Below, piece by piece: positions 5,073 to 56,953 of a DNA stretch of 64,000 bases. The stretch lies in sequence record MW812341.1. One strand, 5' to 3'. The notes under the pieces were generated by a model, which was not told the DNA's origin, searched no databases, and saw nothing but the letters and a program-made list of their open reading frames with translations. Each line of letters starts with the position of its first letter. Position 1 is the stretch's first letter. The position numbers and the translations under genes are program-made.

Positions 5073-5092
5073 TTACCTCAGTTGGACGTCTA

Positions 5093-5916: not shown

Positions 5917-5917
5917 C

Positions 5918-6494: not shown

Positions 6495-6497
6495 ACC

Positions 6498-9168: not shown

Positions 9169-9170
9169 GG

Positions 9171-39530: not shown

Positions 39531-39540
39531 GGAGACTTAA

Positions 39541-42500
39541 ATGCAATCGTATCCTTACGACTGGAAGGGTACCAATCCTGAGAACGCCTTCCTGGAAGAC
39601 CGGATTGTTGAGGGCGATAAACCAGAAGACCGGGTTATCGTCTTAGACCACCGTCCTTTCTTTGGCTTCAATCTGGTCGTCACCGTGGCGGGTAGTACCT
39701 CGCCCCTGACCCTGGGGAAAGATTACCAACTGGCTTACCAGCTCCCAGAACTGGAAGACTCGGTAGCCTCCCCGGTGTTCTGCGGGGTGCAGTTGATTAA
39801 CCCGGACATTGGGGGTGCGCTGCGCTTTGCTGGACAGACCCTGGGTGACACGTTCTATTCACCGTTCGTCGATATTCTCGATTATCTGGTGAAGCACCTG
39901 AACAACCCAGTTGATGTGGATTGGTTGAGACTCGATGGTCGCCCGACATTGTATCCGCCTAAGCCAGCGGCAACCAGTTGGGCTGACTTGCTGAACAAGA
40001 AATACTTGGCCTCGGCGATTCGTGATGTAGAGCTGGACGCGGGTGCCGCCGCAGATGTGATTCGCGGAAAACTCACCAACTTGAAAGCCACTGTTGAAAG
40101 CTTACAGCGTGAGATTACAGCGTTTAACTACCCGGCACACATCGCAACCCACAAAGCGCACGACATTACAATCGCACAAACGGGTGCCCATCCTGCGAAC
40201 CTGAAAGCCCCTGACACGTTCTTAGCCTACGGGAAGACCTTACGTACCCTGACAGCTGAAATCCGTGCCCTGGGGCTACAGCAGAGCGATATCGATAAGT
40301 ATATCGAGAAGTGGGCATGTAAGGATGTTGACGGGGTGTTTGTCCAACAGTTGGCCGCTAACCGTTCACTGTTTAAGTCGAAATCGGGAACATCCGAGAT
40401 TACGTTCACGGATACGTCCTTCACGATTAAGACCAACGGTTCCGTGATTCTGTCCGCCGGATATAACCCTCAAGAGACGACTATTCGCTATATGGAATGG
40501 AAGTCGGGGGTGAACACCCTGCGTATCGAATCATCCGGTACCGGGCTGGGAATGGATAAGCTGACGTTGAATGGGAAGGTGTTGCTTACCACGAATCTGT
40601 TGCTCGAGTATCAAAGCGATGGTAGCGGTGGGGGAAACACTGACCCAGACGATAACAAGCTGTGGATTCAAGGACGCAACGGCGTGTCATTTACTGGGAA
40701 AGGCTCGCGTCTTGACCCGGTGAAAGGTACACTGACGCCGCCAGCAGCAAGCACTACCGTAAAAGGGATTGCGAAGCTGAAAGCTGGCCCTGGTACAGAA
40801 ACCAACGTCGCGTCCACGCCGGGGTCATTGACTCCGTACGAAGGCAAAGCCAGCGGTTACGTACCGAAGACCACCATGATTAACTCAGGCGCAATGGACA
40901 CAGGTTCACGCGCCTTAGTGAAAGCGGATATTGGGCTGGGCAATGTCGACAACACCAAGGACTTGGATAAGCCGGTTTCCCAAGAGCAGCAAGTTGACCT
41001 TGACGAACTGTCTATCAAGGGACACAAGCACGCCTGGGACGATTTGCTGTTGCCGTTAGCTTCCAGCAGCCAAAAGGGTATTGCCCGTTACACGGCATTG
41101 GAAGATGGACTGGCGGGCCAGAAAGGTGTAGCCCCTAGTCTTCTGAAAACTCTGAGTGACCGTTTGGATATCATCGCTGCGGCTGTAGCGGATGTGAAGA
41201 CCGGTGCGGCTACTGACTTTGCAGCGGTGAATGCCTCAACCTGGACAGTCGCGGCAACCAAACGCGGCTTGACCGTACAGGACTTGGAATACTTCTACTT
41301 ATCGCAAGGTGAGAAGAAGTCAGGTGTGGTTAGCGGGACAATCGACCTACAGACCACCCCGATGTTCCAATGGTTCAGTCCGTACAACGCTATGGAACGT
41401 ACCTGGCCGAAATCCGTCCAGAACGGGACGTTGGTGTGGGATGGTATCTCCAGTCAACCATCACTGCCTTTACTGGCTGTGCCAATGGGCGTCACGGCGG
41501 GCCAGATGGGTAACCTGTCTGTGATATCCCTGTTGGCGAAAGAACGTGTGATAACACTTACTGGCAAGCTGGACATTTATGTTGCAGCCGGTGGTAAGGT
41601 TACGGTGTACGTTGATGGCGTAGAGAAAATCTCTGCTAACTCACCAGCGTACGTCACTGTACCGTTTGATAACGACGATGGAACAGCACATACGGTTGCT
41701 ATTCGTGCGGATTGTACCGACACAGCCAAACCCGCCGCGATGATGTATGAGATTTGGGATGGTAAAGCACCGCTGACACGTTCGGATGTGGGTAAGTCTG
41801 TTGCTATACTTCAGGAGTTCGTGACACAGCCCGACGGCTTACGTCATTACCTTTACCTGAATATGGTTACGGGTTCCATCTACGGACGTGCAGAGCCGGT
41901 TGAGTCTCAGGACATCGATATCGAGCACGCGTTGATTGGTTATGTGGATTTGCCAACAGGTGGACTCACGGCATCATCTGTAGCGTTCCCGAAAACGTTT
42001 GACTTCGGGATGGCGAAGGAAATCTCTGACCATGCCATTCGTACCGATGCTCACAAACCTGTAAAAACCGACTGGCGGTTGTCTGACAACGCAGCCATGA
42101 TTCCGATGGGGAAAACGGTCTTTGAGTTAGGGTTGGCGGTGTATGGCCCGGTTGCGAAGATTAACAGCAACGACAAGACCTTAATCAATGTCCAGGCCGC
42201 TGCTGCTCCGGGGGAACTGTTGTGTCTGTGGGAAGTGAAGAACCAGACGCCTTTACGTTGGACGACTCCGTTTAACCCGAAGGCAGATGGCCACACGACC
42301 ATTGAGGGTGGGTTCATCATTGCAGCAACCAGTTTGTATCGCACAACCCATGTTGAGCATCCTGGTTTCGAGTTGGTGTTTGGTGGTGTTCTGGACGGTG
42401 CTTCTGCTGATCCAGCTTATCGTCGTAACCGACTGATGAAGTGGAATGTCAGTGGTGGCGGTAAACCGAAGATTGGTTTCGCCAAGACCTTGACAGCCAC

Positions 42501-43635
42501 AGCTGCTGCACGCACGACGATGCCTGAATATCAGTTAGTCGATGCTCCGTGTACCGTGACGGTGTTGGGTAGTGGGAACATCACAGGCGCTGCGGCACTC
42601 GATATGGATACGCTGGTAAAACAGCTTCCGCGTTTCGCCATACGTTATCGTTACGATTGTACTACGCGTGTCTTGCGTGTGTTCCAACTGTTCTACAGTG
42701 GTGCCGAAGAAACCATTCGCTTCATTGAAGTGGAAGTGAAATTTGACATTGATTTCCAGCATTACCTTACCGGGTTTGTTGGATTTAATCGTCCGACTTC
42801 CACGGGAACTGCTGAGGTTTATGCGGGATTACCAACCTTGATGGATATGTCTGCCGCCGGGTTCGATGATTCCAAATATCACCACTACCGTTCGTTGTTT
42901 GAATCGTACGCGGATGCCCAGAACATTCTGGCTACCGCATCGAGCAACAATACCACATTCAACACGATAACATCGCTCCAACCGGAGACGTTGCTGTCAA
43001 CTGAGTGGGTCTCTTTACCGGGGGACAGTGGTACAGTAGGACGTTCGCACGATGGGTTCTTACCATCTGCATTCTGGGCAGGACGCCAGCGTCAAGGTTC
43101 ACCGTTGAAATTAGCGGCGAACATGAAGTGGTTCGGTGCGTGGGCTGATAACAGCGCCCCGTCACATATGGCGAATATTACTGCGGTGATTAAACTCGCT
43201 GCGGATTCGATTCCATATCGTGCGGTGTTAAGTATCAGTTCTTCGTACGATGGGAAAATGTGGTATGACTCTTCGGGTGTTTCCACTAAGACTTGGGCGA
43301 AGACCACTAACGACACCTCACCACGTTCGGTAGAAATTATGCCGAACAGTGACCGTTTCGTTGGCGGTAGTTCAATCTTCCTGGAGTTCACTGCCCCAGC
43401 AGCCATGGGTGTTCCGTTGAAGCTTGCCTTCACCTTAACCACTTATGATGTTTCAGGTAATGTACTGGAGACGTTTACCCAGGCCAGCCCACTTACGCTG
43501 TGCTCCACCGGGAAGCGTTACTTTATGGAACGACGTAACCCGTACCACATGACGCAAAAAATGTGGGAGTGGTTGTTAGACCGTATGGACACTGAACGTC
43601 AAGCAGACGGTACAGGTTTCGGCGGTTGGGCATAG
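39541..43635 (+). CDS. Tail fibre protein 2 (1364 aa)
   Basis: Same N-terminal module; ASTTVKGIAKL, IGLGNVDNTKDLDKPVS, HKH motifs. Confidence 0.8.
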   Translation: MQSYPYDWKGTNPENAFLEDRIVEGDKPEDRVIVLDHRPFFGFNLVVTVAGSTSPLTLGKDYQLAYQLPELEDSVASPVFCGVQLINPDIGGALRFAGQTLGDTFYSPFVDILDYLVKHLNNPVDVDWLRLDGRPTLYPPKPAATSWADLLNKKYLASAIRDVELDAGAAADVIRGKLTNLKATVESLQREITAFNYPAHIATHKAHDITIAQTGAHPANLKAPDTFLAYGKTLRTLTAEIRALGLQQSDIDKYIEKWACKDVDGVFVQQLAANRSLFKSKSGTSEITFTDTSFTIKTNGSVILSAGYNPQETTIRYMEWKSGVNTLRIESSGTGLGMDKLTLNGKVLLTTNLLLEYQSDGSGGGNTDPDDNKLWIQGRNGVSFTGKGSRLDPVKGTLTPPAASTTVKGIAKLKAGPGTETNVASTPGSLTPYEGKASGYVPKTTMINSGAMDTGSRALVKADIGLGNVDNTKDLDKPVSQEQQVDLDELSIKGHKHAWDDLLLPLASSSQKGIARYTALEDGLAGQKGVAPSLLKTLSDRLDIIAAAVADVKTGAATDFAAVNASTWTVAATKRGLTVQDLEYFYLSQGEKKSGVVSGTIDLQTTPMFQWFSPYNAMERTWPKSVQNGTLVWDGISSQPSLPLLAVPMGVTAGQMGNLSVISLLAKERVITLTGKLDIYVAAGGKVTVYVDGVEKISANSPAYVTVPFDNDDGTAHTVAIRADCTDTAKPAAMMYEIWDGKAPLTRSDVGKSVAILQEFVTQPDGLRHYLYLNMVTGSIYGRAEPVESQDIDIEHALIGYVDLPTGGLTASSVAFPKTFDFGMAKEISDHAIRTDAHKPVKTDWRLSDNAAMIPMGKTVFELGLAVYGPVAKINSNDKTLINVQAAAAPGELLCLWEVKNQTPLRWTTPFNPKADGHTTIEGGFIIAATSLYRTTHVEHPGFELVFGGVLDGASADPAYRRNRLMKWNVSGGGKPKIGFAKTLTATAAARTTMPEYQLVDAPCTVTVLGSGNITGAAALDMDTLVKQLPRFAIRYRYDCTTRVLRVFQLFYSGAEETIRFIEVEVKFDIDFQHYLTGFVGFNRPTSTGTAEVYAGLPTLMDMSAAGFDDSKYHHYRSLFESYADAQNILATASSNNTTFNTITSLQPETLLSTEWVSLPGDSGTVGRSHDGFLPSAFWAGRQRQGSPLKLAANMKWFGAWADNSAPSHMANITAVIKLAADSIPYRAVLSISSSYDGKMWYDSSGVSTKTWAKTTNDTSPRSVEIMPNSDRFVGGSSIFLEFTAPAAMGVPLKLAFTLTTYDVSGNVLETFTQASPLTLCSTGKRYFMERRNPYHMTQKMWEWLLDRMDTERQADGTGFGGWA

Positions 43636-43670
43636 GACGGCACGCTTGCGAGCGTGCTTAGTTCGCAAGC

Positions 43671-43705
43671 TACCGCCCTTTCGGGGGCGGTATCCGTTTT
43701 TATTT
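43671..43705 (+). terminator. Intrinsic terminator
   Basis: TACCGCCCT-TTCG-GGGGCGGTA plus T-run. Confidence 0.7.
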
Positions 43706-43715
43706 AAAAGCAGGA

Positions 43716-46700
43716 GTGTTATTCATGTCGACGACAGCCCCAGCCCCGTTCAGTGGGACGCTAAAGCTAGAGACGTACCCAAACCGGTTTAATACGGTTG
43801 TGCCGCCCGAGGGGCCGTTCTACCGCACTGGTTTAAAGCTGACTAGCACTGGCACTAACCCACGTCCGCTGACGGAGGGGTTGGATTACTACCTTTGCTA
43901 TTACTTCAAAGAAGCAGCGGAAGCCCTGAAAGACCAGGTCTTCGGCGGCATCATGCTGATTACCGAAACCTCGTGTAATTACACCATCTATTCCGTCGGT
44001 CGCGAATATCGCGTACCGCAGTCCGAAATCGGGAAGTTCCTGGTTAAGCCGGACATGAAAGACCCACGTAACGTCGACTGGTCTGAACTGATGCGCTATG
44101 CGCCGGTTGTGGCTCCTATTGACCCACCGACCAGCTTAGAAGAAGCTATCCTTCGCGACGACGTGGTAAAGGCACTGGACGATATCCGTAAAGGGATTCT
44201 CGAGCGTGCTGGTGAGTTGGATGAAGCGTACACCGAAGTCACCGAACTTATCTTTGCCAACGGCAAGAAAATCTTCGACGACAACATGTACCAGCATCAC
44301 ATGGTGAAAAACGCCCACCAATACACAGCAGAAGAAATCGGTGCCTTAAAGGTATTGACCAAAGCTGTGGATGCAACGAAGGCATTCGGTAAGACCATTG
44401 ATGAACTGGTCGACCTGATGAAACGTAACGGTATCCAACAAACGCACATCGATACGCTGATGCCTGTGGTGCTGGGTGAACTGCGTGGCCGCTTGAAGGT
44501 TCTGAGCAATGGCGCACTGACGTTCCGTACATCAGACTCCAGCCACGTCATTACGTTGCAGGGTGACAAGTTCCTTATCACCACCACCAAGCCGATTACC
44601 ATTACGGCAGATGCGGATAAGAACGAGCCGGGCATTGGGGTAGAGGTTACGTCTGGCCTGAACGCCATGTATGCTCTGTCCGGCGCGAAAGCTCCAATCT
44701 TCAACGGCGCATACCTGATTACCCCGGACATGGTTTCCTTATATCTGTCTGCGGTAAAACTGTTGCCTGCCAATGCCTACTTCAGCTCCACGGACAGCGT
44801 GAAGATTTACGGTAGTGCGAAAGACTATTCCCCGGTTAACATGACGGGTGTGGTTCCAACGGCAACTACCGCAGTCCCAGGCTTGTTACTGGTGACCTCG
44901 GTTTCGGCAAACATCTCAGCAGGCGCAGCCATTTCACAGGCAGCCGTCTCTGCGTTGAAAACCACGCTGGATAACTACGTGGACTCCACGTACAAAGTCA
45001 ACAACAAAGGCTTTGTCACTAACCCGACAACCGGGAACCAAGAGCTGACCCTGTTAGCCTCTGACCTGAGTCTGGGTAATGTGGAAAACACCGCCCCGAA
45101 CGAAAAACCAGTAACCACTGCGATTCGTGCGGTGTTGAACACCAAAGCTCTGAGCACCCACACGCACACCTTTGCTGACTTGACAGGCGTACCTACTGCG
45201 TCTGACACTGTCGCAGGTCTGGTGCAACTGTGGGACGCTATTGATGCTACTACTGATAAGGTGGTGACATCGAAGCAGGGCTACAATGTTCAGCAGAAAA
45301 TTAATACGGTGAAAGCCACGGTTAATAAGTTGCTGCCGTCTTGGACGACTGCGGGTTCTCAGTTCGGTAACCCAGGCTTCTTGCCGATTCCAACTGTGGG
45401 TAACTTCGCAGGCTACCAGAAGAATCTTGAAGGTAATGGTCGTTTAGGTGTCGTGCGGAAAGAGGCGGGGACGTTGTATGTGTTACGTAACGCCACTGAT
45501 GGTATTCCGAACACAGACAACATCTATTACGCTTATGCGGAGATGCCTGACTCTGGGGCGTTGAACAATCGTCAACAAACCTCCGTAACCTATAAGCCAG
45601 TTGGTCTAGCGACGCTGGCACCGGGTGTACGCCTCGTGAAGATTATCTTACCAGGCGACGACGGGATGATTGCTTACGGTTCCGACGGTAAGTATTATCT
45701 GGTGCTGTTCAACGGTACGCTGAACCACGCTAAGCATACGGCCGTGTATGAGTTCACCCCACCGCAGGAAAACAGCGACGGTGGTACCCGAGCACTGACT
45801 ATCGACGCATTAACCATGCAACTGGTTGTGTATAAAGATAAGGTATACCTTATCAAAGCACTGCTTGATAACACACGTTACTGCGTAGGTGTGTGGTCGG
45901 GTAAACCGGGTGAGACCTTCACGAACTTCCCACTGACCGGCGGTGTTGGCACCAACGGCGATTACACGCTGTTGAAAGCGACACTTACCAATCGTATCAC
46001 CCAACGTGATGGTACCCACTATTTCACCCAAGCTGGGTGGGATTACTGGACACAGGGTAAGAACGTTCAACATGGCCCGCATGCTAACCGTGCGGGTATC
46101 GTGAAGAACACGCAATTCCGAATGGGTTTCTGCGTGTCGGTCTGGTTAGCGACAGCAGCGGGAAGCACCGGCTTTAAACGTTGGCCAACCTCCTTTACCT
46201 TCGACTTCGAAACCAAAGCAATCGCCATTGATAACCCAGAAATCTTCCCAATGAAGGTGGATGAGACGGGTATCACGTTCGCGACTGGTGTAAACATGAA
46301 TGATTACAACCAGGACGTGAAGTGGGCATACGGTTCGGCTAATAACCGCACCTATGTATCCTTCAGCGGCGATAACTTGATGGTGTTCTGGGATCAACCG
46401 GAAAACACCTCGATGGCAGGCTGTAGCTCCAGTAAGATACCGAATGGATTAGATGTGTTTGACTTCTTGTCAGGCAAATCGAAACCTGGCGCTTCGCAGG
46501 TAGCCGCCTGGGCCTTTAACCAAGGTCGTGGCTCCGTCTACGAGATGTCCATGAGTTCACCGGTGTTCGTGGGTTCAAACAGCTACCTGATGAGTCCGGT
46601 ACAGGCCAATAAAGCCATCTTGGTTGAGTGTGACCCTAACACGAAATATGATTCGGCTTATGGCGGCTTCGGGCCGACGAACAACCGTACGGACTTTGAT

Positions 46701-48752
46701 TGGAACACTTATCTCAAGTTGACCACCATGCCGTATGTGTGTACCGCTGCGGTTAATGATGGTACCTTAAACGGTTGCTATTGGGATGACGCGGGTAGCC
46801 AGAACTATCAGGCTATCGGTTCCACCCCAACGTCCGACACGCTGAACATCTCTTCGACCGAATGGAACAAGTTGATTGGCATCGTGAAATCGGCTCCGGG
46901 TTCTGGTGCTGCAAACGGTTATGCGTTCGAACGTATCAATGCCGCAGACAAGCTGCTAATCTCGCTGTTCACGTTCCGTCCTAAAGCCGCTAATGCGGTG
47001 TGGATGGTGCAGGCCGCATGTATGGCTGTGCGTAACGGTAAGACGCTCGTTGACTACTACATGTTCCGTGTAACGCCGTCTGTCTCTGCGACAGGTGATG
47101 TGACCTTCCCGGCCAGCACGGTATCACGTATCTGGTTAGCGAATGACCTGGACTACACCACTGTTAATATCTCCCTTACGGATTTCAGTGGACGTGGTCG
47201 TCGCTTTGGTCAGTCTATCCTTTGCGAAGGCACTGACAAGAAAGGTATCTTGTACATTCCAAACGTACTCTCGGTTAACCAAGTGGGTAACACGGGTGCG
47301 CTGAATCTGGAAATCGTATACGACGCCACTTCTTCGTTCGTGGCAACCGCAGGTCATCTCCGTATGCACCGTACCAATTACGACCCGTCGTATCTGGCAC
47401 CGTTAAAGGACAAGCTGTGCCTCACGAACCTCAGTTCGATTGGACCAGCCTTCTGTGCGGGGAACTCTGCGACGTTGGCGCAGTGGATGACGACTGGGAT
47501 GTATGTGCCTGATGGTTCACCGGTAGAAATCCTCGCTGGGGTGAAAACCGCCGAAGGGTGGAACTTCTACATGACGGAAACAACCAGCTGGCGTATTGGT
47601 GCGAAGTATTATAGTGCCGCACCATACTCCGTTGATTTGAAAGCCGCCTTCCCCGGTAACTATCAGAACCGTATCTTCTACGTGCATGTCGTGCTGGTGA
47701 ATAACGTTCCGCAGTATCAACTGCTGGACGCACGCCAATCAGATACCGACACTCGTCTGTATCTCGGTACGATAACGACTGACAGTTCACGCATCATTGA
47801 TACCCAGCTTGAGAAAGTGAAACGCATGGGTGGCTTGAAACAGATGTTGGAACACGCCGGGACAGAGTACCGTCACGATGTAGACCGACACACTGACCAA
47901 GCGCTGTCGCCGTTAGGGTTGCTCCGTAAAGAGCCACTGATGGTACCTGGTTCAATCCCGGCTTATCTCGATGCACGTTACAGCAACTCGGTGATTTCAC
48001 CGCAGAAGCGTTCTGAACGTCGTGCAACCATTATCAAAACACCTCGTGTGTTTGCTGATGGTGAGATTGGTGACCCGGTCGCGGACTTCTTCCCATCAGC
48101 AAAAGCCGTAGCAGCACAATCGTCTGAGAACAGTGACGCCGCAACCGCAGGCATTCTGTGGGTAGGTGCTGACCTCCCTGACCTCGGCGGTAGTTTCAAC
48201 TGGTCGGTTCGTCCACAGGTTACACCAACCAAGTCTAAGATTCGCATTCGTGTGTATATTCCTGCGAACATTGCAGGGACATCCACCAACGTGGGTATTA
48301 ATGGGCAGTGGACGCCGGTGCCACATGGCTCGAGTGTGACTATTGACCTGACAGTGTCACCGGGGACAAAACTCCTCGTGCGTATTGCAGGCTCAGTAAC
48401 CAGTCAGAACTGGCGTGTTTGGGGTTCGAAATGGATGGGCTTTAGCATCAGTGATTTTGATGAAGCCTCAGGTACAGAGACGCAGTTAACCACCTCTGGT
48501 GTGAGCACCCCGCTTATCTACAATGCGGTGAACCACAACCTGCCAAATATCGTCCTGCGTGCAGAAACGATTGATTTAGGAGTGAACACAAACAACTACT
48601 GGCCGGTCATTAGTGCTGGTAACTGCTCATGTTCACCACCGGTTATCGTGACTGATAATGCAACCACCATCAAGGTGGCGACCACCTGGGTCAGCCTATC
48701 CGGTCTAGAAACAGCGACTGACATCGCCGTTAATCTTATGCCGAGGTTATAA
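43716..48752 (+). CDS. Tail fibre protein 3 (1678 aa)
   Basis: VPPEGPFY module; LSLGNVENTAPNEKPV, HTHTFADL, ASDTVAGLVQL. Confidence 0.8.
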   Translation: MLFMSTTAPAPFSGTLKLETYPNRFNTVVPPEGPFYRTGLKLTSTGTNPRPLTEGLDYYLCYYFKEAAEALKDQVFGGIMLITETSCNYTIYSVGREYRVPQSEIGKFLVKPDMKDPRNVDWSELMRYAPVVAPIDPPTSLEEAILRDDVVKALDDIRKGILERAGELDEAYTEVTELIFANGKKIFDDNMYQHHMVKNAHQYTAEEIGALKVLTKAVDATKAFGKTIDELVDLMKRNGIQQTHIDTLMPVVLGELRGRLKVLSNGALTFRTSDSSHVITLQGDKFLITTTKPITITADADKNEPGIGVEVTSGLNAMYALSGAKAPIFNGAYLITPDMVSLYLSAVKLLPANAYFSSTDSVKIYGSAKDYSPVNMTGVVPTATTAVPGLLLVTSVSANISAGAAISQAAVSALKTTLDNYVDSTYKVNNKGFVTNPTTGNQELTLLASDLSLGNVENTAPNEKPVTTAIRAVLNTKALSTHTHTFADLTGVPTASDTVAGLVQLWDAIDATTDKVVTSKQGYNVQQKINTVKATVNKLLPSWTTAGSQFGNPGFLPIPTVGNFAGYQKNLEGNGRLGVVRKEAGTLYVLRNATDGIPNTDNIYYAYAEMPDSGALNNRQQTSVTYKPVGLATLAPGVRLVKIILPGDDGMIAYGSDGKYYLVLFNGTLNHAKHTAVYEFTPPQENSDGGTRALTIDALTMQLVVYKDKVYLIKALLDNTRYCVGVWSGKPGETFTNFPLTGGVGTNGDYTLLKATLTNRITQRDGTHYFTQAGWDYWTQGKNVQHGPHANRAGIVKNTQFRMGFCVSVWLATAAGSTGFKRWPTSFTFDFETKAIAIDNPEIFPMKVDETGITFATGVNMNDYNQDVKWAYGSANNRTYVSFSGDNLMVFWDQPENTSMAGCSSSKIPNGLDVFDFLSGKSKPGASQVAAWAFNQGRGSVYEMSMSSPVFVGSNSYLMSPVQANKAILVECDPNTKYDSAYGGFGPTNNRTDFDWNTYLKLTTMPYVCTAAVNDGTLNGCYWDDAGSQNYQAIGSTPTSDTLNISSTEWNKLIGIVKSAPGSGAANGYAFERINAADKLLISLFTFRPKAANAVWMVQAACMAVRNGKTLVDYYMFRVTPSVSATGDVTFPASTVSRIWLANDLDYTTVNISLTDFSGRGRRFGQSILCEGTDKKGILYIPNVLSVNQVGNTGALNLEIVYDATSSFVATAGHLRMHRTNYDPSYLAPLKDKLCLTNLSSIGPAFCAGNSATLAQWMTTGMYVPDGSPVEILAGVKTAEGWNFYMTETTSWRIGAKYYSAAPYSVDLKAAFPGNYQNRIFYVHVVLVNNVPQYQLLDARQSDTDTRLYLGTITTDSSRIIDTQLEKVKRMGGLKQMLEHAGTEYRHDVDRHTDQALSPLGLLRKEPLMVPGSIPAYLDARYSNSVISPQKRSERRATIIKTPRVFADGEIGDPVADFFPSAKAVAAQSSENSDAATAGILWVGADLPDLGGSFNWSVRPQVTPTKSKIRIRVYIPANIAGTSTNVGINGQWTPVPHGSSVTIDLTVSPGTKLLVRIAGSVTSQNWRVWGSKWMGFSISDFDEASGTETQLTTSGVSTPLIYNAVNHNLPNIVLRAETIDLGVNTNNYWPVISAGNCSCSPPVIVTDNATTIKVATTWVSLSGLETATDIAVNLMPRL

Positions 48753-48785: not shown

Positions 48786-49991
48786 TTGGCCATGCCAGAT
48801 ATTTTACTTCAGTATCCACTCGACCTCACGGGGAAGATGACGTCTAACGCCGTCAGTATTCCTATCGTACTGGGTGGTGGGAAAGTTAACCGTGCGTTCG
48901 CTTTCCCGGCGGGGCCGTTCTACGCAGATACGTTTAAGCTGCGACCAGCGAACTCGCCAAACACGACGTATAAGCGCGGTGTCGATTACGAGCTTATCTA
49001 TATCCATCCCGTTTACCAGAAGCTTGCCGGTAACAAAGAAATCTGTATGGCTGTCGTTGTTACAAACAGCGCCATCCCGACCGATGTTGTTGCCAGTGCG
49101 CAAGTCACAGGTGGTCCGCAGTCAGCGAACATTGCTGCGATTAAACAGGCGCTGATTGACGCGAACCTGGATGACCGTGTGGTAAACTTCAAAGACCTGC
49201 GTAATGTACCGGATACCTTTGCGGCTGCTCCGTCCTTTAAAGACATCGGCGACATCTTTGGTTTTGAATACATCATTACCGAACTGGCAGGTATCCGCGA
49301 TAGCATTAACTCGGGTAACACCGTTCAGTTAGAACAACTGAAAGTGTTGATTGAGAATATGCAGACGCAGTTTATGGCTGCACTGAATAATCACATCAAT
49401 GCCCAGGGTAACGTTCACAGCCTGGATATCCATCAGGCAAACGGTTTAACTGAAACGGAAATCCGTGCACTGATTCAAGGTGTGCAAACAGCAATCAATG
49501 CTGTCCTGGCCGACATCGGGGATTTGAAAGCGGCAGATACGGCAATCAACCAACGCATTGATGCGGTAGTGGCGGCATTGGGTTCCTGGAACGATCAGCT
49601 GAACTCAGTAGCGCAGAACTATCAACGCATGGCGTTGCAGATGGCGAATCTGAACGACCTGGTCGCGCAACTCCAGAAGATGGTCAATGACCAGAATCAG
49701 GTGATTGCAGGGTTGAATCAACGTATCACTGACCTGGAAAATTCGGGGCAAGATACGCAGCAACAGATTCAACAGCTCCAGCAGGACTTGACGGCACTGC
49801 GTCAACAGGTCGCCAACAACACCTCTGCTATTTCGACGGTGTCTCAGAACCTGAATACGCACGTCAATGCCGACAACCCGCACCCGAAATATCTCCACAA
49901 GCAGTACGGCGGCGTGGTTCAAGCTGCGGTACACGTCAACTCGAGCCTTACTTCTCGAGACGACGTACAGGCGGAAGCAGGTACCAAATAA
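48786..49991 (+). CDS. Short fibre/baseplate adaptor with Asn/Gln-rich coiled coil
   Basis: FPAGPFY module; long heptad region; HVNADNPHPKYL. Confidence 0.75.
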   Translation: MAMPDILLQYPLDLTGKMTSNAVSIPIVLGGGKVNRAFAFPAGPFYADTFKLRPANSPNTTYKRGVDYELIYIHPVYQKLAGNKEICMAVVVTNSAIPTDVVASAQVTGGPQSANIAAIKQALIDANLDDRVVNFKDLRNVPDTFAAAPSFKDIGDIFGFEYIITELAGIRDSINSGNTVQLEQLKVLIENMQTQFMAALNNHINAQGNVHSLDIHQANGLTETEIRALIQGVQTAINAVLADIGDLKAADTAINQRIDAVVAALGSWNDQLNSVAQNYQRMALQMANLNDLVAQLQKMVNDQNQVIAGLNQRITDLENSGQDTQQQIQQLQQDLTALRQQVANNTSAISTVSQNLNTHVNADNPHPKYLHKQYGGVVQAAVHVNSSLTSRDDVQAEAGTK

Positions 49992-50053: not shown

Positions 50054-50437
50054 ATGGCAATCTCATTAAAAAACGTACGCGACCGCCTGCAAAGCGTGGA
50101 GAACACTTACGCAACTGGACCTCGGGTTGATCCCCAGGTAGCATCGGGGGCTTTTAACGCAGCGGATCGCTTCGCTGGTTGGACGCCTGCTCAGTTGGAT
50201 TGTGGTGGAACGTGTAGCTGGTCGTGCTCTAATGGTTGTTCCGCATCGTGTACGAGTTGTTCGGGTACTTGTACCTCAACGTGTACTGGTGCATGTACAG
50301 GCGGGTGTTCTACCGGCTGTTCTGGTTGTTCCGGTTGTTCCGGGAGTTGCTCTGGTAGCTGCTCTGGTAAATGTAGCGGCTGTTCTGGTTCCTGTGGTTC
50401 CGGCTGCGGTGGCTGTTCAGGCTGTTCGGGGCCGTAG
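50054..50437 (+). CDS. Cys-rich CXXX-repeat peptide P1 (candidate radical SAM substrate)
   Basis: Leader MAISLKNVRDRL; CGGTCSWSCS core; 21 Cys in CxxxC/CxxC spacing; SD AAGGA. Confidence 0.85.
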   Translation: MAISLKNVRDRLQSVENTYATGPRVDPQVASGAFNAADRFAGWTPAQLDCGGTCSWSCSNGCSASCTSCSGTCTSTCTGACTGGCSTGCSGCSGCSGSCSGSCSGKCSGCSGSCGSGCGGCSGCSGP

Positions 50438-50830
50438 GGGAAAAACATGGCAATCAACCTCAGAGATATTCAAAACCGGCTCAGTGCTATCGATGCTGCT
50501 GCATTGAAAGACAACGCCGGTGTACAAACCTACATCCGCAACAAGGGAACCAACAACTCACAGCGTTTCGGGGGTTTCTCCCGTGAGCACTATGACTGCG
50601 GCGGTACTTGTAGTTGGAGCTGTTCTTCATGCTCCGGTGGGTGTTCTGGCTCGGCATCAGGAACCTGTGGGGCCAGCTGCTCCGCAAGTTGTACGTCAGG
50701 TTGTTCATCGACGTGTACGGGCTGCTCAGGATGTTCGGGCAGTTGCTCTAGCGGTTGTTCTGGTACCTGTACGGGCGGTTGTAGCTCTTCGTGCAGCTCA
50801 AGTTGTTCCGGTTGTTCTGGGTGTTCAGGA
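50200..50830 (+). repeat. Imperfect 9/12-nt tandem repeats (TGT/TGC-TCN-GGN) encoding CSG/CSGS units in P1 and P2
   Basis: For example TGTTCTGGTTGTTCCGGTTGTTCCGGGAGTTGCTCTGGTAGCTGCTCTGGT. Confidence 0.8.
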
Positions 50831-50842
50831 CCACAACGCTAA
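50447..50842 (+). CDS. Cys-rich CXXX-repeat peptide P2
   Basis: Leader MAINLRDIQNRL; HYDCGGTCSWSCS; 20 Cys. Confidence 0.85.
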   Translation: MAINLRDIQNRLSAIDAAALKDNAGVQTYIRNKGTNNSQRFGGFSREHYDCGGTCSWSCSSCSGGCSGSASGTCGASCSASCTSGCSSTCTGCSGCSGSCSSGCSGTCTGGCSSSCSSSCSGCSGCSGPQR

Positions 50843-50867
50843 CGGTATAGCCGACCCCTCACCATAT

Positions 50868-50893
50868 TTTTTACACACTTGGGGGTTACTGTG
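50868..50893 (+). promoter_or_regulatory. Bipartite promoter variant TTTTTACA-N14-TGTG inside the peptide cluster
   Basis: Counted spacing; the TGTG overlaps the P3 start codon. Confidence 0.45.
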
Positions 50894-51097
50894 ATATCAC
50901 TTAAAAGTATCAGAGACAAGCTAGGGCAAGTGGAAGGCTACATCCGTACTGACGATGCGAACGATTACATTCGTAACAGTGGTACGGTAAGCACCACGAA
51001 CAACCTGGCAAGTCTCCCATTATCGCATTACAATTGCGGCGGGTCTTGCAGCTGGACGTGCAGCGGTGGCTGTAGTCACGGAGCAGGAAACCGTTAA
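50891..51097 (+). CDS. Short Cys peptide P3 (68 aa, 4 Cys)
   Basis: GTG start gives MISLKSIRDKL, matching the P1/P2 leader; HYNCGGSCSWTCSGGCS. Confidence 0.75.
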   Translation: MISLKSIRDKLGQVEGYIRTDDANDYIRNSGTVSTTNNLASLPLSHYNCGGSCSWTCSGGCSHGAGNR

Positions 51098-51109: not shown

Positions 51110-51997
51110 ATGAAGAACGATATGCACCTTGCGTTTCGCACAACGCAAAACTTTCCGTTACAAATCAGCATCTATGACAGCGTGAAGTATCATCTAACGG
51201 GCGAAATCCTGTTGATTACTCAGCTGCCAGCTGAATGGCCGAAGGTTCGCGGACGTGAGTTAATCAATCCGAAAAACTTCGAAGTGCTGAATGATTACAT
51301 GTTGGCTGGGCACAAGGTTGAGCATATCTACCTGAATACCGGTGAGCAGGAAATCAACGGCAAGTTCATCGACCGCAAATACTTCTTCAGCGACGGTGTG
51401 CTGAACCAGTGCGGTGATTTAGAAATGCTGTTGACGCCGTTTGCAGAAACGGGCCTCAAGCCAATGGTGCGCCGTGAGTGGAGCTGGGACTACCCGAGTT
51501 CTCTGCCATTCTGGTATTCGCAAGTGCCTGCGGAAACCGAGCACTACGAAGGGGTAGAAATCTATTACCCAATCGAAGGCTACGAAAGCCTCGGCATCCA
51601 CAAGATGCTCGACCTCTTAGCATTCAGCTATAAGTTTAAATGGCTGCACAGCGAGAAGAAATTTGTTGCCATCACTGACGAACACGAAATCACCAAGCGT
51701 ATCCGCAAACCGTGGATGCAGTATCTGGTGCAGTGGAAGTACGGTGAAGCGCCGGGAACCGAAGCAGACTTAACGAAGCTGGTGAGCTTCTTAATGCAGA
51801 AGGTTGACCTGAGCGTTGAAGAGCAAGTGGCCGCTAGTGCAATCCTCGAACGTAAGGTTACTCTCGATGACCTGGAACGCATTAACGAGCGTCATGAAGT
51901 GCTGAACAAGATTCTTGCTGCTTACCATGACCCCTTCGTATTGAAGCAGGGTGTGGACATCAAAGAAGACCCACTGTTCGCACTGACATTCGAATAA
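51110..51997 (+). CDS. Accessory protein of the peptide/radical SAM cluster (295 aa)
   Basis: SD GGGGAG; no motif recognised. Confidence 0.75.
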   Translation: MKNDMHLAFRTTQNFPLQISIYDSVKYHLTGEILLITQLPAEWPKVRGRELINPKNFEVLNDYMLAGHKVEHIYLNTGEQEINGKFIDRKYFFSDGVLNQCGDLEMLLTPFAETGLKPMVRREWSWDYPSSLPFWYSQVPAETEHYEGVEIYYPIEGYESLGIHKMLDLLAFSYKFKWLHSEKKFVAITDEHEITKRIRKPWMQYLVQWKYGEAPGTEADLTKLVSFLMQKVDLSVEEQVAASAILERKVTLDDLERINERHEVLNKILAAYHDPFVLKQGVDIKEDPLFALTFE

Positions 51998-52018: not shown

Positions 52019-52924
52019 ATGAGTGAAGAAGCTGTGTCGGCCATTCGTCGCGACCCGACAGACACTCCCATGGAACTGTCTATCGTTACCACCTCGAAGT
52101 GCAACTTAGATTGTAGCTTCTGTGGTGGTGCGGGGTATATGGATGTCAAGGACGTTGCGCGCGACATCCAGAAAGATAAACTGTTCGAGGTGCTAGAGCA
52201 GCACCCAACGATCCGCCAGATTAACTGGACAGGCGGAGAGCCTTTACTGGCTTTCAAGAAAATCCAGGAGTTCATGGCAGAACTGAAAGAACGTTACCCG
52301 CACCTGCAACACGAGATGTACACTAACGCGTTGCGTCTGAGCCCTGAGCAGCTTCCGCTACTCTCCCAGCTTGACCGTATCTTCGTCTCGTTTGACGGAT
52401 ACGAAAAATCAGAACGTCCTTTACTGCGCATTGCAGAAGAAGGTCGCTTTGAGGTGTTTGATACCCTGCACGCTCTCAACAATGTGAGCCTGTGGTCGGT
52501 AGTAACCCGTGCTCAGCTGGGTGATAAGCGCTGGCAGGATGATTTACTGGAACTCCACCGTGCAACGTATCACTACGGGTTCCAGGGTTTCCGTCTGATG
52601 TTTGATAACTACATGCCTAAGCCGTTGTCGCCTGACCATGTGATGAACTTCATGTACGGCTACAACAAAATGCATGAGCAGCTGACCTATCTGAATCGTA
52701 TCAACGATTCACACATTCCACTGAGCATCAATAAGTTCTTCGCTCAGCATTGTGATGATTGTAGCAGCTTGATGTGGGTCAAGTCAGATTCGACGTTTGA
52801 GCAAAACCAAAACGCCGTTGATGTCATTGATTCTGGGTGTAATCGTCTGGCCGAAGTGATTGGCTTTGATGCGTACAAGTACATCAATCGAACTATTCAG
52901 GCGGGACTAAATAATGCGCGATAG
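52019..52924 (+). CDS. Radical SAM enzyme 1 (short C-terminal Cys domain)
   Basis: CNLDCSFC (CxxxCxxC), WTGGEPLL, VSFDG, C-terminal CDDC...GC. Confidence 0.9.
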   Translation: MSEEAVSAIRRDPTDTPMELSIVTTSKCNLDCSFCGGAGYMDVKDVARDIQKDKLFEVLEQHPTIRQINWTGGEPLLAFKKIQEFMAELKERYPHLQHEMYTNALRLSPEQLPLLSQLDRIFVSFDGYEKSERPLLRIAEEGRFEVFDTLHALNNVSLWSVVTRAQLGDKRWQDDLLELHRATYHYGFQGFRLMFDNYMPKPLSPDHVMNFMYGYNKMHEQLTYLNRINDSHIPLSINKFFAQHCDDCSSLMWVKSDSTFEQNQNAVDVIDSGCNRLAEVIGFDAYKYINRTIQAGLNNAR

Positions 52925-54254
52925 TTTCATTCCGGCCTCAGAGCCGAAAATCACAAAGACCTATCAGGTCGTGACCAACCTGTCGTGCAACCTCGACTGT
53001 GAGTATTGCTACGAACGTAAGTATCCGCGTAACAACAAAGTCGTGGATGCGGTAGACTTCATCCATGCGTGCTTCGACCGTGACCGTCATCTTCCAAATG
53101 TGGAAGTGATTATCGACATCATCGGCGGTGAGCCAATGATGCAGCCGAAGATTCTGCTGGGTGTGTTTGAAGCCGCTGAAGAACTGGCCGCTCGTGATGG
53201 GCGTGATGTTATCTTCTCTATCTCCACGAACGGTACGCTGTTTGACAAACCGTTGAACCGTGAAATCATCGAGCGTTGGAAAGACAGACTGTCTATCGGC
53301 GTATCCATCGATGGTCTGCCGGAAGTGCACGATAAGTACCGTATCTTCACCACCACGCGTGAAGGTTCGTACGAGAAGGCCATGAAGGGCTATAACTACC
53401 TCAAGTCCGTGGGTATCCTCGAGCTGGGTGTGAAGGCAACCTTTACTTCTGATACGCTGCCGAAATACGGCGCGTCAATGAAGCACCTGATTGACGTTAC
53501 TGGTGGTGGTACACTGTCCGGTAACGTAACGTACGAAGACGTACTGCCGCGTAGCTCCGCTCTGGAAATCGCTAACCAGATGATGGACGTTATCGACTAC
53601 TGGTTTGAGAAGGGCTTGCAGAAAGACCCGCGTAACCGTCTGACCCACATCTTCCCAGATGGTCTGGACTTCATGGCAACATGGGACCCAGATTGGCGTC
53701 AGAAACTGCTGGATGATGAAGCAACACGTCTTGACCCTGAGCGTGTGCGTCCATTCTGTGGTACCGTAACGCACATGACCTGCCTGGGCTTTGACCGTAA
53801 GATTTACGGTTGTAACCGCTTCATGTCAACTGTTACCACACGCCAGGCTATTGGCGAGTTAGTGGGACGTGAGATTGTGAACACCGACGGCGGTAAGCTG
53901 TTAGGTGAAATCAATAAGCAGTACACCAACTACCCAGAAACTTGCCTGGGTTGTCCGATGAAGCACGCCTGTGGTAGCTGTGCTGCTGCTGCGTACGAAA
54001 ACGGTGATGGTGAACTGGAAGCACGTCGTGAATACCATGGCGAACGTCGCCAGTGTGGTTGGACGACGGCTAAGCTGCTTGTAGCCGAATACTTCTATCA
54101 GAAGACCGGTACAATCCGCTACACCGACCTGAACGATAAAACCCAGTGCTACTGCGTATCTTGTGTACGTGCTCGCTCTGAGGCAGAAAAGAAAACTCAA
54201 TTAGGAGCACCTGCGAATGAAGTCCCTGCTAATACACAATTTTACGAAGCGTAG
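52914..54254 (+). CDS. Radical SAM/SPASM peptide maturase
   Basis: CNLDCEYC, IGGEPM, STNGT, SIDG..HDKYR; SPASM-like CG..C..GCNRF..CLGCPMKHACGSC..C; extra CYCVSC. Confidence 0.92.
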   Translation: MRDSFIPASEPKITKTYQVVTNLSCNLDCEYCYERKYPRNNKVVDAVDFIHACFDRDRHLPNVEVIIDIIGGEPMMQPKILLGVFEAAEELAARDGRDVIFSISTNGTLFDKPLNREIIERWKDRLSIGVSIDGLPEVHDKYRIFTTTREGSYEKAMKGYNYLKSVGILELGVKATFTSDTLPKYGASMKHLIDVTGGGTLSGNVTYEDVLPRSSALEIANQMMDVIDYWFEKGLQKDPRNRLTHIFPDGLDFMATWDPDWRQKLLDDEATRLDPERVRPFCGTVTHMTCLGFDRKIYGCNRFMSTVTTRQAIGELVGREIVNTDGGKLLGEINKQYTNYPETCLGCPMKHACGSCAAAAYENGDGELEARREYHGERRQCGWTTAKLLVAEYFYQKTGTIRYTDLNDKTQCYCVSCVRARSEAEKKTQLGAPANEVPANTQFYEA

Positions 54255-54774
54255 TCTTCACCTGGTAGACTTGTTTCTCCGTAAACATAAGCTGTACAAC
54301 GTTCACGCGATTGTACCGGCTGAAGACTTCTCCAAGGAAGTGGAAGCCCTGTGTGTTCGCTTTGGGCTTAACGTGATTGTTCCGCTGTCCGGTCTGGAAG
54401 GTGGTCATCTCTCGTTGCAGGAAGTGGAGAAGCGTAACCCCGGTATCGAGGAACGCATCAAAACCTTCCCGCGTCACAAAATCGAAATCCTGCGCCGTTC
54501 TACGCGCAATATGGATGCCGAAAACCTGTTGGGTCTCGCCATGAACTGGCCTGAGATCCGCGTGCGTGCTTGTCGTTCCCTGGAGCAGTATGATGCCTTC
54601 GGGGAAGAGATGCATATGGTGTTTGGATTTATGGAACAGAACCAGGACGATGCCAAGCTGCTCAACTTCCACTTCGGTGATGAGTTGGAAACCGATTTCC
54701 AGATGTTTGATTTCGGGCTGGCAATGGAACTGGGGCTGGTAGGAGCGAATGAATGCTTACTAATGACGAAATAA
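54217..54774 (+). CDS. Accessory hypothetical protein (185 aa)
   Basis: Overlaps both neighbours; SD AGGAG. Confidence 0.7.
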   Translation: MKSLLIHNFTKRSLHLVDLFLRKHKLYNVHAIVPAEDFSKEVEALCVRFGLNVIVPLSGLEGGHLSLQEVEKRNPGIEERIKTFPRHKIEILRRSTRNMDAENLLGLAMNWPEIRVRACRSLEQYDAFGEEMHMVFGFMEQNQDDAKLLNFHFGDELETDFQMFDFGLAMELGLVGANECLLMTK

Positions 54775-55409
54775 AACGTCGTTACTTCGAGATGGGTGCG
54801 CCAATTGACCGTCATGGCAATTACCAGGCCATCCACCGTACCGAAGATGCTACCAAGCAGGGGTTCTGTACCCTGCTGCATTACCATCTGTTAAATGGGA
54901 TGACAGACAAGGCAGCGATGGCTGCTTTAAAAGGTTACGACCTGTCTGACGTTGAGGTCAACTTCATCATGAAGAAGACCAAAGACTTTATCGCAGATGT
55001 TCTGGAACTGCCGTTGGATGACATCCGTAAAGGACTGGCATCTACGGTCGGCCACATGTGGCGTGAGTTTAACCGTATCTTGGGTGAGTTGAATACCCGT
55101 TACGAAAACCTGCGTTTCGAAGACATTGTTGTTGGTGACCGTCGTTATCAAGCGACCGAGAAATCGCGTGCTGCCCTGGCTGGTTATATTCAGTCTGCGG
55201 TTGACCCGATGTATTGGATTGATGCGATGAACACCCCAGTGGAGCCGTTTGACATGTCAAACGTGCAAGAACTGTATGCGGCGATTATCCAACGTGATAA
55301 TGACCTGCACATGGCGCTGAATGTGAAGAAACAAAAACTTCGCACACTGGCAGAAAAGAATGACTTCACTGCGGTGATGGCAATGGCCAAGGAAGAAAAC
55401 CTGGCGTAA
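54753..55409 (+). CDS. DUF4376-like / tail fibre assembly-type protein
   Basis: C-terminal RRYQATEKSR..WIDAMN..FDMS..LY.AI..R..LH..KKQKLR pattern. Confidence 0.6.
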   Translation: MLTNDEIKRRYFEMGAPIDRHGNYQAIHRTEDATKQGFCTLLHYHLLNGMTDKAAMAALKGYDLSDVEVNFIMKKTKDFIADVLELPLDDIRKGLASTVGHMWREFNRILGELNTRYENLRFEDIVVGDRRYQATEKSRAALAGYIQSAVDPMYWIDAMNTPVEPFDMSNVQELYAAIIQRDNDLHMALNVKKQKLRTLAEKNDFTAVMAMAKEENLA

Positions 55410-55413
55410 GACG

Positions 55414-55449
55414 GTGTGCCCTTCGGGGCACACTCTCTTTTTATTTTTT
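55414..55449 (+). terminator. Intrinsic terminator closing the fibre/peptide/radical SAM unit
   Basis: GTGTGCCC-TTCG-GGGCACAC plus T-run. Confidence 0.8.
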
Positions 55450-55488: not shown

Positions 55489-56091
55489 ATGGCAATGCCA
55501 GTAGACCGTTGGAGTATGGAAGGCATCATTGCCGCCAAAGTTAATCTGGAAGGTGGTTATGTGAATAACCCCAACGACTTAGGTGGGCCTACCAAGTACG
55601 GGGTAACACAAACGACCGCTCGTGAGAACGGTTACACCGGCGACATGCGTGACCTGACTTACGCACAAGCCATCGCGATTTACAAGAAAGGTTGGTGGGA
55701 CCGTATGCGTCTCGATACCTTTATGGCACTGAACCCGCTGTTGGCTGACCGCATGTTCGACTTCGGTATCAACGCCGGTCGTGCTAACTGTATCAAGTCT
55801 CTGCAACGTATCCTCAATGTGTTGAACCGTCAGGGTAAGCTGTACGCTGACATCGACGCTGATGGTGGTATCGGTACATTGACCATGAATGCAGTACAGG
55901 GTTACGTGAAAGCCCGTGGTGCAGACGGCGTTAACCGTCTGATGTTTGCATTGACTTGCCACCAGGTTTCTTACTACACAGAAATCTCTGAGAAGCGTGC
56001 ACAGAACGAAGAGTTCACCTACGGCTGGTACGACCGTGTGTACCGTGAAATGGGCGACTACGCTATCAAGGTAGGCGTATGCTCTAAATAA
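55489..56091 (+). CDS. Glycoside hydrolase family 108 lysozyme with peptidoglycan-binding domain
   Basis: EGGYVNNPNDLGGPTKYGVT; FDFGINAG; C-terminal F.YGW..R. Confidence 0.92.
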   Translation: MAMPVDRWSMEGIIAAKVNLEGGYVNNPNDLGGPTKYGVTQTTARENGYTGDMRDLTYAQAIAIYKKGWWDRMRLDTFMALNPLLADRMFDFGINAGRANCIKSLQRILNVLNRQGKLYADIDADGGIGTLTMNAVQGYVKARGADGVNRLMFALTCHQVSYYTEISEKRAQNEEFTYGWYDRVYREMGDYAIKVGVCSK

Positions 56092-56108: not shown

Positions 56109-56243
56109 ATGAAAAGACATTTGCCTGAGTTATTCCAGAAGAAATTGAATGCATTTTTTACGGATGATGATCCGCCTCCTGCGGTGTTGTGGTTAAGTGT
56201 CGCCATTCTGGTGGGGTACTTTCTGATTAAGGTGTTCCACTGA
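56109..56243 (+). CDS. 44-aa single-TM protein (holin-like candidate)
   Basis: Manual translation MKRHLPELFQKKLNAFFTDDDPPPAVLWLSVAILVGYFLIKVFH; SD AGGA; TGATG-coupled to the next gene. Confidence 0.55.
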   Translation: MKRHLPELFQKKLNAFFTDDDPPPAVLWLSVAILVGYFLIKVFH

Positions 56244-56953
56244 TGCTTGAATTAAAATACAAAGTGTTGGAGAAGCAGTGGTTTGTCCTCACGGAAGATT
56301 TCCGGGTACCGTTTACGTTACGGTCTCTGTATCGCGGACAAAAGGGTTTGGATGAGATGGTATACCTGACGGGTGTACATCCTGATAAGGAAATGTACGT
56401 GACAGCTCCTGCGGGCTTTGTGACGGACTTGGCGAGTATCCCGCCTGCCTTACAACCACTTCTGCATCCGGATGGCCCATGGGCCGCTGCGGCGTGTATA
56501 CACGACCTGCTGTATCAGAAGACACCTTCACCGGTTCCTTATCCTGATACGCCAGCTGGGAATCTGTCGCGTTCCACGGATAAAGCATTTGCGGATTTGA
56601 TGTTCTTGCGCATTATGGAAATGACAGGCGTCGATAACTTCGTTGCACAGTCTTTCTACGAAGCCGTCCACCGTTTCGGTTGGCCGTCGTATGCAGACAA
56701 GAACGATGACCCGCATCAGTACAGTTATCCATCCCCATCGGGCGTGACACTGAACTACGCCAGGAACTATCTGTTCTTCCGTGAGTACATCGAAAGCGCA
56801 GTACCCGACCATGAACGTTGGGACTTGACCACACATCGCTGTGTGAATATGCGTTACCAGAACATCAAGCGGGCATTTAACGCCTCTGCGGAGTTCTGGG
56901 GCGTTCAGCCTATAAGTGAACCGGTTAATCAGATTCCTTTATTAAAGGTCTGA
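56243..56953 (+). CDS. DUF1353 family protein
   Basis: PAGFVTDLASIP, AACIHDLLY, ADLMF..IM, AVHRFG. Confidence 0.85.
   Translation: MLELKYKVLEKQWFVLTEDFRVPFTLRSLYRGQKGLDEMVYLTGVHPDKEMYVTAPAGFVTDLASIPPALQPLLHPDGPWAAAACIHDLLYQKTPSPVPYPDTPAGNLSRSTDKAFADLMFLRIMEMTGVDNFVAQSFYEAVHRFGWPSYADKNDDPHQYSYPSPSGVTLNYARNYLFFREYIESAVPDHERWDLTTHRCVNMRYQNIKRAFNASAEFWGVQPISEPVNQIPLLKV

Follow-up and report, generated by a model that had tools for sequence, protein, structure and literature searches.

A radical-SAM cassette and its putative cysteine-repeat substrates in the tail-fibre operon of SPN3US-like jumbo phages

To our knowledge, peptide maturation by radical S-adenosylmethionine (radical-SAM) enzymes is known from bacterial natural products and not from phage tail modules. 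In the CXXX-repeat system (TIGR04114 repeat, TIGR04115 maturase, TIGR04116 accessory protein and TIGR04117 target), a SPASM maturase without an N-terminal recognition domain adjoins Cys-x-x-x repeat proteins rich in Ser, Gly and Thr. The SPASM enzyme PapB, of the freyrasin system, installs several thioether rings where a Cys-x3 motif is repeated and links Cys to Asp or Glu. CteB, of the SCIFF (thermocellin) system, is a SPASM enzyme that forms Cys-to-carbon thioethers; SCIFF precursors are about 45 amino acids (aa) long and hold six Cys. Sactipeptide maturases of the SkfB type, with a twitch domain, are short radical-SAM enzymes with a few extra C-terminal Cys. Here we describe a related cassette in a window of 64,000 nucleotides (nt) of sequence record MW812341.1. 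The source is Erwinia phage pEa_SNUABM_9 (MW812341, Machinavirus, 247 kb; 100% identical over the window), an SPN3US-like jumbo phage whose host is Erwinia amylovora. Three adjacent genes for Cys-repeat proteins, named P1, P2 and P3, are followed by the gene of an accessory protein and by two radical-SAM genes, rSAM1 and rSAM2. Conservation of this cassette extends over the whole of the SPN3US-like jumbo phages, and two unrelated phage lineages also have it. In the searchable literature there is no paper on the P1–P3 genes or on radical-SAM enzymes in phage tail modules. We lean, with some reserve, towards P1–P3 being substrates of a phage maturation cassette related to the CXXX-repeat systems, in which they would receive thioethers and serve the tail fibres.

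P1 (50054–50437, + strand) encodes 127 aa with 21 Cys, an N-terminal part of about 49 aa being followed by a 78-aa core. P2 (50447–50842, +) encodes a 131-aa paralogue with 20 Cys and P3 (50891–51097, +) a 68-aa paralogue with 4 Cys. The ORFs (open reading frames) bear out the Cys counts given in an earlier note on this DNA. For P3 an alternative TTG start at 50879 would give 72 aa. The GTG start at 50891 is preferred because of its better fit to the paralogues and its GGGGG Shine-Dalgarno sequence. All three proteins match phrog_6085, a family of unknown function (E 4e-45 for P1, 8e-52 for P2 and 2e-25 for P3). They share one layout: an N-terminal part of about 48 residues that opens M-A-I-S/N-L-K/R, a C-x3-C-S-W unit, and then 0 to 19 more Cys at C-x3 or C-x2 spacing. 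About 10 residues ahead of the first Cys, [L/F]-x-G is conserved in the family. The C-x3-C-S-W-x-C unit begins at the first Cys and lies at 50201–50227 in P1, 50597–50623 in P2 and 51035–51061 in P3 (all +); it reads CGG[T/S]CSW[S/T]CS in all three. Over 15 aligned sequences both C and the S of the unit are invariant and the W is nearly so. This confirms the three-part grammar proposed in the earlier note (leader, fixed unit, repeat tail), with the genes of two different enzymes adjoining. The single invariant Trp of that proposal stands as the unit Trp of P1–P3, but the N-terminal part of P1 holds a second Trp. Likewise P1 ends in CSGCSGP, whereas P2, said to share this end, carries two residues beyond the motif. 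The one Cys-to-Ala gap of P2 is present as described, with a spacing of 7 that equals 3+1+3.

In the tails the units have the form C-[S/T]-[G/S]-x. Over 38 distinct long cores we counted 635 CxxxC and 104 CxxC units; Ser or Thr directly follows Cys in 78% of the former and 98% of the latter. Ser makes up 29% of the core residues, Gly 26%, Cys 25% and Thr 9% (together 89%), which excludes a chance origin of the Cys pattern. Neither Asp nor Glu occurs in any core. A profile search of 1.84 billion representatives returned 26 relatives of the P proteins, which form one family with CSW in nearly all members. The N-terminal part of P2, used as a protein database query, gave just 2 matches because gene callers miss these genes. 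Two possible origins of the N-terminal part were rejected. For homology to the N-domains that bacterial Cys-tail proteins of the prophage type carry, hhalign gave a probability of 3%, and the first Cys unit alone aligns. A tail-fibre motif, N-A-x-x-L-G-G ... Y, is absent from all the fibre proteins compared and from the window.

Strong purifying selection acts on P1, P2 and P3, which are real genes of the + strand. In comparisons with phages Caitlin, EaH2 and Asesino, the ratio of non-synonymous to synonymous change (omega) is 0.02–0.06 in the cores of P1 and P2, at a synonymous divergence (dS) of 0.8–1.4; over the comparison as a whole dS is about 0.4–1.4. The P3 core shows zero non-synonymous changes, and omega is about 0.16 in the N-terminal parts. 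These substitution patterns prove the + frame. The GenBank record of the window has an antisense coding sequence (CDS) over P1 (50191–50448, −), an out-of-frame 40-aa CDS within P2 (50629–50751, +) and no CDS for P3. Similar antisense calls are present in ChrisDB, Caitlin, SNUABM_4, CR5, Phobos and Kwan. In SPN3US (NC_027402), P1 and P3 are unannotated, and the sole CDS annotated between the gp167 and gp165 genes (L008 3573–3908) has a frame other than that of P2; the annotated gp166 is an out-of-frame ORF. Published SPN3US proteomics could not detect P1–P3, since the correct proteins were not in the searched database.

The two enzymes are a 301-aa radical-SAM protein (rSAM1, 52019–52924, +) and a 446-aa radical-SAM/SPASM protein (rSAM2, 52914–54254, +). 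Both are members of the radical-SAM superfamily by their PF04055 scores (52.3 and 53.1 bits, cut-off 29.5), and all orthologues of both keep CX3CX2C, which lies at residues 25–32 of rSAM2. The C-terminal set of 7–8 Cys that marks SPASM enzymes is present in rSAM2, where C282, C290, C300, C344, C347, C353, C356 and C381 are invariant across eight phages and the prophage locus L033 (see below). rSAM1 has 3 C-terminal Cys and lacks both a SPASM domain and an N-terminal recognition domain; its C-terminal CxxC...GC[N/S] motif is invariant. A full-length SPASM enzyme is carried by 66 phage records. After its SPASM region rSAM2 has a CxCxxC (residues 412–417; window 53145–54251) that is conserved in all jumbo-phage orthologues and absent from the shorter rSAM2-like enzymes of L033 and of the contig L162; it could be an extra metal site. 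The RefSeq start of rSAM1 lies too far downstream in SPN3US (L008 5058–5972) and CR5 (L010 5106–5981). This late start removes the CX3CX2C, which the full ORFs retain.

Of the described systems, the CXXX-repeat kind resembles the phage cassette in its maturase without a recognition domain and in its targets, which here too consist of tandem Cys-x-x-x units encoded next to the enzyme. The rSAM2 alignment spans the whole TIGR04115 profile. Its score is 114.2 bits, under the cut-off of 350, whereas the control, a bona fide member at the bacterial locus L107, scores 387 bits. P2 matches TIGR04117 and TIGR04114 weakly and below cut-off (TIGR04114, 14.5 bits against 20). Among the curated families PapB gives both enzymes their highest score (rSAM2 125.6 bits, rSAM1 46.5 bits; NF047865 cut-off 340). 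The Cys-x3-Asp/Glu acceptor motif of freyrasin is missing from the acid-free phage cores. The only match of rSAM2 to a solved structure is CteB (5wgg, E 2e-10). Residue 101 of CteB aligns with residue 19 of rSAM2, so rSAM2 lacks the N-terminal recognition domain of CteB. Its TIGR03974 score is 57.4 bits against a cut-off of 425, and the phage precursors, with 68–131 aa and 4–21 Cys, differ from those of SCIFF. The best match of rSAM1 to a solved structure is weak (SkfB, 6efn, E 4e-5). The SAM-binding core alone aligns, rSAM1 has no recognition domain at its N-terminus, and its CxxC...GC[N/S] motif belongs to the phage family alone. Neither did the Trp-linking families, whose kind also includes streptide StrB, give scores that would place the enzymes among them (DynA 59 and 26 bits, cut-off 450; WgkB 33 bits, cut-off 650), and none of DynA, DarW and WgkB came near its cut-off with rSAM1.

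The accessory protein (51110–51997, +; 295 aa) belongs to phrog_8030 and has an orphan fold. Its AlphaFold model has a pLDDT (predicted local distance difference test) score of 89, and a fold search of PDB and BFVD found no match besides its own orthologue. A relationship to a 250-aa protein of L033 was considered and rejected as weak (probability 8%). Unlike TIGR04115 systems, which have TIGR04116, the window has no protein that matches this accessory family, and the 295-aa protein takes its place. The cassette also departs from the CXXX-repeat kind in its second, small radical-SAM enzyme, in the C-x3-C-S-W/F unit and the phage-specific N-terminal part of its targets, and in its setting within the tail-fibre operon of a jumbo phage.

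P1–P3 are co-transcribed with the 295-aa protein, rSAM1 and rSAM2 at the end of a block of tail/baseplate fibre genes. From P1 to a gene for a 218-aa DUF4376 protein (54753–55409, +), the last of the operon, genes overlap or are 9–48 nt apart. A terminator-like hairpin of 9 pairs (6 G-C) and a following T run (55413–55434, +) ends the operon; no other terminator-like site lies on the + strand between 49991 and 55409. Between rSAM2 and the DUF4376 gene is a gene for a 185-aa phrog_7988 protein (54217–54774, +), which overlaps the end of rSAM2 and is confined to this phage clade. Domain and family scans of the window proteins found no protease or transporter gene in the operon. SPN3US-like phages transcribe with their own polymerases, and a sigma-70 promoter scan gave no more sites than in shuffled sequence. 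Rfam and tRNA scans gave no matches. Upstream lie a gene for a 401-aa coiled-coil protein (48786–49991, +), 68% identical to the SPN3US tail protein gp167, and genes for three giant co-oriented proteins (1242, 1364 and 1678 aa; 35802–48752, +), none of which matched in a Pfam scan. By position these giants correspond to SPN3US gp168–170, a baseplate/fibre paralogue family, and gp168 is described as a baseplate/fibre protein in the main text of the SPN3US study (PMC5105663). In SPN3US, gp167–171 are in particles and are lost from tailless heads, while particles lack gp161–165, the enzymes and accessory proteins (Table S4, PMC5105663). The virion table (PMC5105663) lists gp167–171 and not gp161–166, and P1–P3 were never searchable there. 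We dropped this table as an argument against virion incorporation, the annotated gp166 being out of frame with P2. Downstream of the cassette terminator are an endolysin gene with GH108 and PG_binding_3 domains (55489–56091) and then, shortly past the cassette, a DUF1353 gene (56243–56953), whose product is called a 'tail assembly chaperone' in relatives.

The Cys number of P1 does not vary among the phages compared. We examined 20 distinct P1–P3 trios together with L030, from Machinavirus, Erskinevirus, Seoulvirus, Derbicusvirus, Wellingtonvirus and metagenomic relatives. In 21/21 distinct phages P1 carries 21 Cys, always with Trp in the unit and with cores of 78–84 aa, and this number holds across genera whose SPASM enzymes are about 60% identical. 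P2 orthologues have 19–23 Cys and cores of 80–92 aa; the unit aromatic is Trp in 16 and Phe in 4, SPN3US among the latter. P3 varies more, with 2–5 Cys and cores of 20–162 aa, and its unit always has Trp. In Derbicusvirus and Wellingtonvirus P3 holds the C-x3-C-S-W unit alone, with no later Cys. In L164 and L165 a non-Cys extension of 90–140 aa follows the unit and fits neatly between the neighbouring genes. The separate character of the CSW unit suggested in the earlier note is upheld by these P3 forms.

These comparisons imply that length is fixed among orthologues by selection and differs only between paralogues. This speaks against the proposal that tail length is tunable by slippage or recombination, as does the lack of long DNA repeats. 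Of the imperfect tandem repeat described at the DNA level, the synonymous diversification proved real, and the repetition proved weak. Tandem Repeats Finder reported just two 9-nt arrays of about 3 copies each (50313–50343 and 50802–50826). For the 18 CSG units, P1 uses 8 distinct 9-mers and P2 likewise 8. Exact DNA repeats reach 16 nt at most, which is as expected after permutation of codons among identical residues (14 ± 2.4 nt) and compares with 30 nt if one codon were used per residue. Such diversification leaves little for slippage to act upon.

Two further phage lineages carry cassettes of this kind. The metagenomic contigs L162 and L163 bear a four-part cassette. Their 211-aa protein matches a tail-fibre PHROG at its N-terminus and phrog_6085 over the rest, including the CSW unit and a Cxxx tail. 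Downstream in L162 two radical-SAM genes flank a relative of the accessory protein gene (phrog_8030-like, E 2e-6): the first resembles rSAM1 (hhalign probability 97.9%) and the last rSAM2 (35% identity, E 5e-67). L033 is a prophage tail module like that of phage P2, with Baseplate_J, Tail_P2_I, sheath, tube and tape-measure genes. Here the C-terminus of a PF12571 tail-collar fibre protein consists of CSG repeats. After the fibre gene come the gene of an unknown 250-aa protein, an rSAM2 orthologue at 30% identity (E 7e-59), an orthologue of rSAM1 with the same C-terminal motif as in the jumbo phages, and a gene for a DUF1353 protein. This DUF1353 gene (9029–9394) is directly 3' of the two radical-SAM genes. 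L033 has both enzyme types, yet the Cys tail contains no aromatic residue. The idea that one of the enzymes would be assigned to the Trp unit is somewhat weakened, as is Trp invariance among homologues, by this tail and by the Phe variants of P2.

With rSAM2 as bait, a scan of bacteria at one genome per species gave 67 loci with relatives, and ORFs with CxxxC runs are present in 42/67. ORFs beside the L107 maturase match TIGR04114 and TIGR04117, and the TIGR04116 accessory occurs in 11 loci. The loci show three kinds of context. At 19 loci peptides of 50–80 aa accompany an ABC transporter, often with a response regulator (13/19). At least 9 loci lie in prophage tail modules (Baseplate_J, tail fibre, endolysin) and encode proteins of 150–330 aa with Cys tails. 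The remaining kind consists of 6 loci in Bacteroidales, with TatC and Tat-signal Cys-repeat proteins. No locus has both transporter and baseplate genes. By score rSAM2 is equidistant from all three groups.

Some of these and other loci deserve mention in their own right. In Bacteroidales, L125, L134, L137, L138, L143, L145 and L151 encode Cxxx-repeat proteins with a twin-arginine-like signal beside 2–3 radical-SAM genes, and tatC is present in six of the seven (not in L143). This suggests that a folded, modified product is exported. In the viral contig L041 a 1376-aa protein (2874–7004) ends in 44 Cys in a run of the C-Q-x-x type, immediately 5' of a radical-SAM gene. A shorter run of this type ends a 448-aa protein in the viral contig L035 (8769–10115), about 1.3 kb past a radical-SAM match. 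The viral contigs L037 (4069–4543) and L038 (6471–6942) encode small peptides made up nearly entirely of C-x-x-C repeats with N, D, Q or S in between. They adjoin a more distant radical-SAM gene and appear to be a different type of target.

On balance the analysis somewhat favours P1–P3 as substrates of the neighbouring enzymes with a role at the tail fibres. rSAM2 would abstract a hydrogen and form a thioether from the sulfur of each Cys to a neighbouring residue's carbon. The cores are without Asp or Glu, so the acceptor would have to be Ser, Thr or Gly. The Cys tail would thus become a chain of small rings of fixed length. A second modification would come from rSAM1, perhaps at the C-x3-C-S-W unit. 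Because neither enzyme has a recognition domain of its own, the 295-aa protein would present the substrate, standing in for the missing domain. The products would serve the tail fibres, either as a component or in assembly, and would not be an exported antibiotic. Thioether formation is proposed by analogy with the nearest characterised relatives, since PapB, TIGR04115 and CteB form or accompany Cys cross-links. What ties the system to tail fibres is that the Cys number is fixed, that the genes lie in the fibre operon, that Cys tails are fused to fibre proteins and that neither a protease nor a transporter is encoded. SPN3US particles, in which gp167–171 are tail proteins, contain neither the enzymes nor the accessory protein, and we count this too in its favour.

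Several points weigh against this interpretation. No modification has been observed for the P1–P3 system, and no account of the modification or chemistry of TIGR04115 systems was found in the searchable literature. rSAM2 scores far under every curated cut-off (114 against 350 bits, 126 against 340 bits), and its score is no closer to prophage-type than to transporter-type relatives (median 94 and 92 bits). Nothing places P1–P3 in virions, and the SPN3US proteome database held none of them. The layout of N-terminal part plus core, in three paralogues, also fits a classical leader-cleaved peptide. The roles that the 295-aa protein and rSAM1 may have rest on context. A ladder of thioether staples, built into small proteins or fibre C-termini and forming part of the tail fibre or baseplate, is a narrower claim that we put forward tentatively. 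P1, P2 and P3 might then form a hetero-oligomeric, covalently stiffened fibre element.

A different outcome, which we regard as rather unlikely, is that P1–P3 give classical diffusible RiPPs (peptides that the ribosome makes and that are post-translationally modified). The 48-residue leader would be removed, and the cross-linked cores would be freed at lysis as antimicrobial or signalling peptides aimed at rival bacteria or phages. Leader-plus-core layout and several precursors are as expected for such peptides, the conserved [L/F]-x-G could be the cleavage site, and at the 19 bacterial loci small Cxxx peptides occur together with ABC transporters and response regulators. The operon, however, has no protease or transporter of its own, and it lies within, and is co-transcribed with, the tail-fibre gene block. 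That the Cys tail is fused to a fibre protein (L033) and to a fibre-like N-terminus (P0088) is hard to reconcile with a free peptide, as are the extensions of 90–140 aa past the unit in P3 variants. Antibiotic peptides typically have diversifying cores, whereas the core length here is constant across genera.

Somewhat more doubtful is a role outside the virion, in which the modified proteins would act transiently in the folding or assembly of the giant fibres, as tail-fibre chaperones do. The cassette occupies the usual place of fibre assembly genes, beside the DUF4376 gene and the DUF1353 'tail assembly chaperone' gene, and its enzymes and accessory protein are not in SPN3US particles. The C-terminal fusion in L033 suggests instead that, barring cleavage, the fibre keeps its repeat, and P1–P3 match no chaperone family. 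We consider it improbable that P1–P3 are Cys-rich proteins which bind metals or clusters without being cross-linked, whether like metallothioneins or as Fe-S or sulfur donors for the enzymes. A Cys content of 25%, regular spacing and small neighbouring residues would suit that function, and both adjacent enzymes require Fe-S clusters. Yet Cxxx-run proteins accompany TIGR04115-type maturases in 42/67 bacterial loci and in three phage lineages, a co-occurrence that is the pattern of enzyme and substrate, and no metallothionein or Fe-S scaffold family was matched. That P1–P3 are not genes, and that the antisense strand or another frame codes as several GenBank records have it with their CDS over P1 and inside P2, is refuted to the point of negligible probability by the dominance of synonymous changes in the + frame (30–38 against 2.5–5 non-synonymous in the cores, compared with Caitlin), by the N-termini and Shine-Dalgarno sites common to the three paralogues, and by a reading frame that is unbroken in more than 20 phages.

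A radical-SAM maturation cassette is a conserved trait of a whole jumbo-phage clade, which includes the genetic model SPN3US. The substrate genes of SPN3US are all unannotated and hence invisible to proteomics; existing mass-spectrometry data, re-searched with the correct ORFs, can directly test the idea. Through the association of Cys tails with fibre proteins and the conserved enzyme pair, seen in three phage lineages and in many prophages, the uncharacterised TIGR04115 family gains a concrete biological setting. If the tentative staple ladder in tail fibres or baseplates is real, the CXXX-repeat family, hitherto read as peptide natural products, would largely be a phage-tail accessory system. 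Most likely P1–P3 are cross-linked by the neighbouring enzymes, and in that case enzyme-made cross-links would be used in phage tail biology; a staple ladder, if real, would be the first case of enzyme-made radical cross-links in a virion component. The cassette points to new post-translational chemistry in virus structure or assembly.

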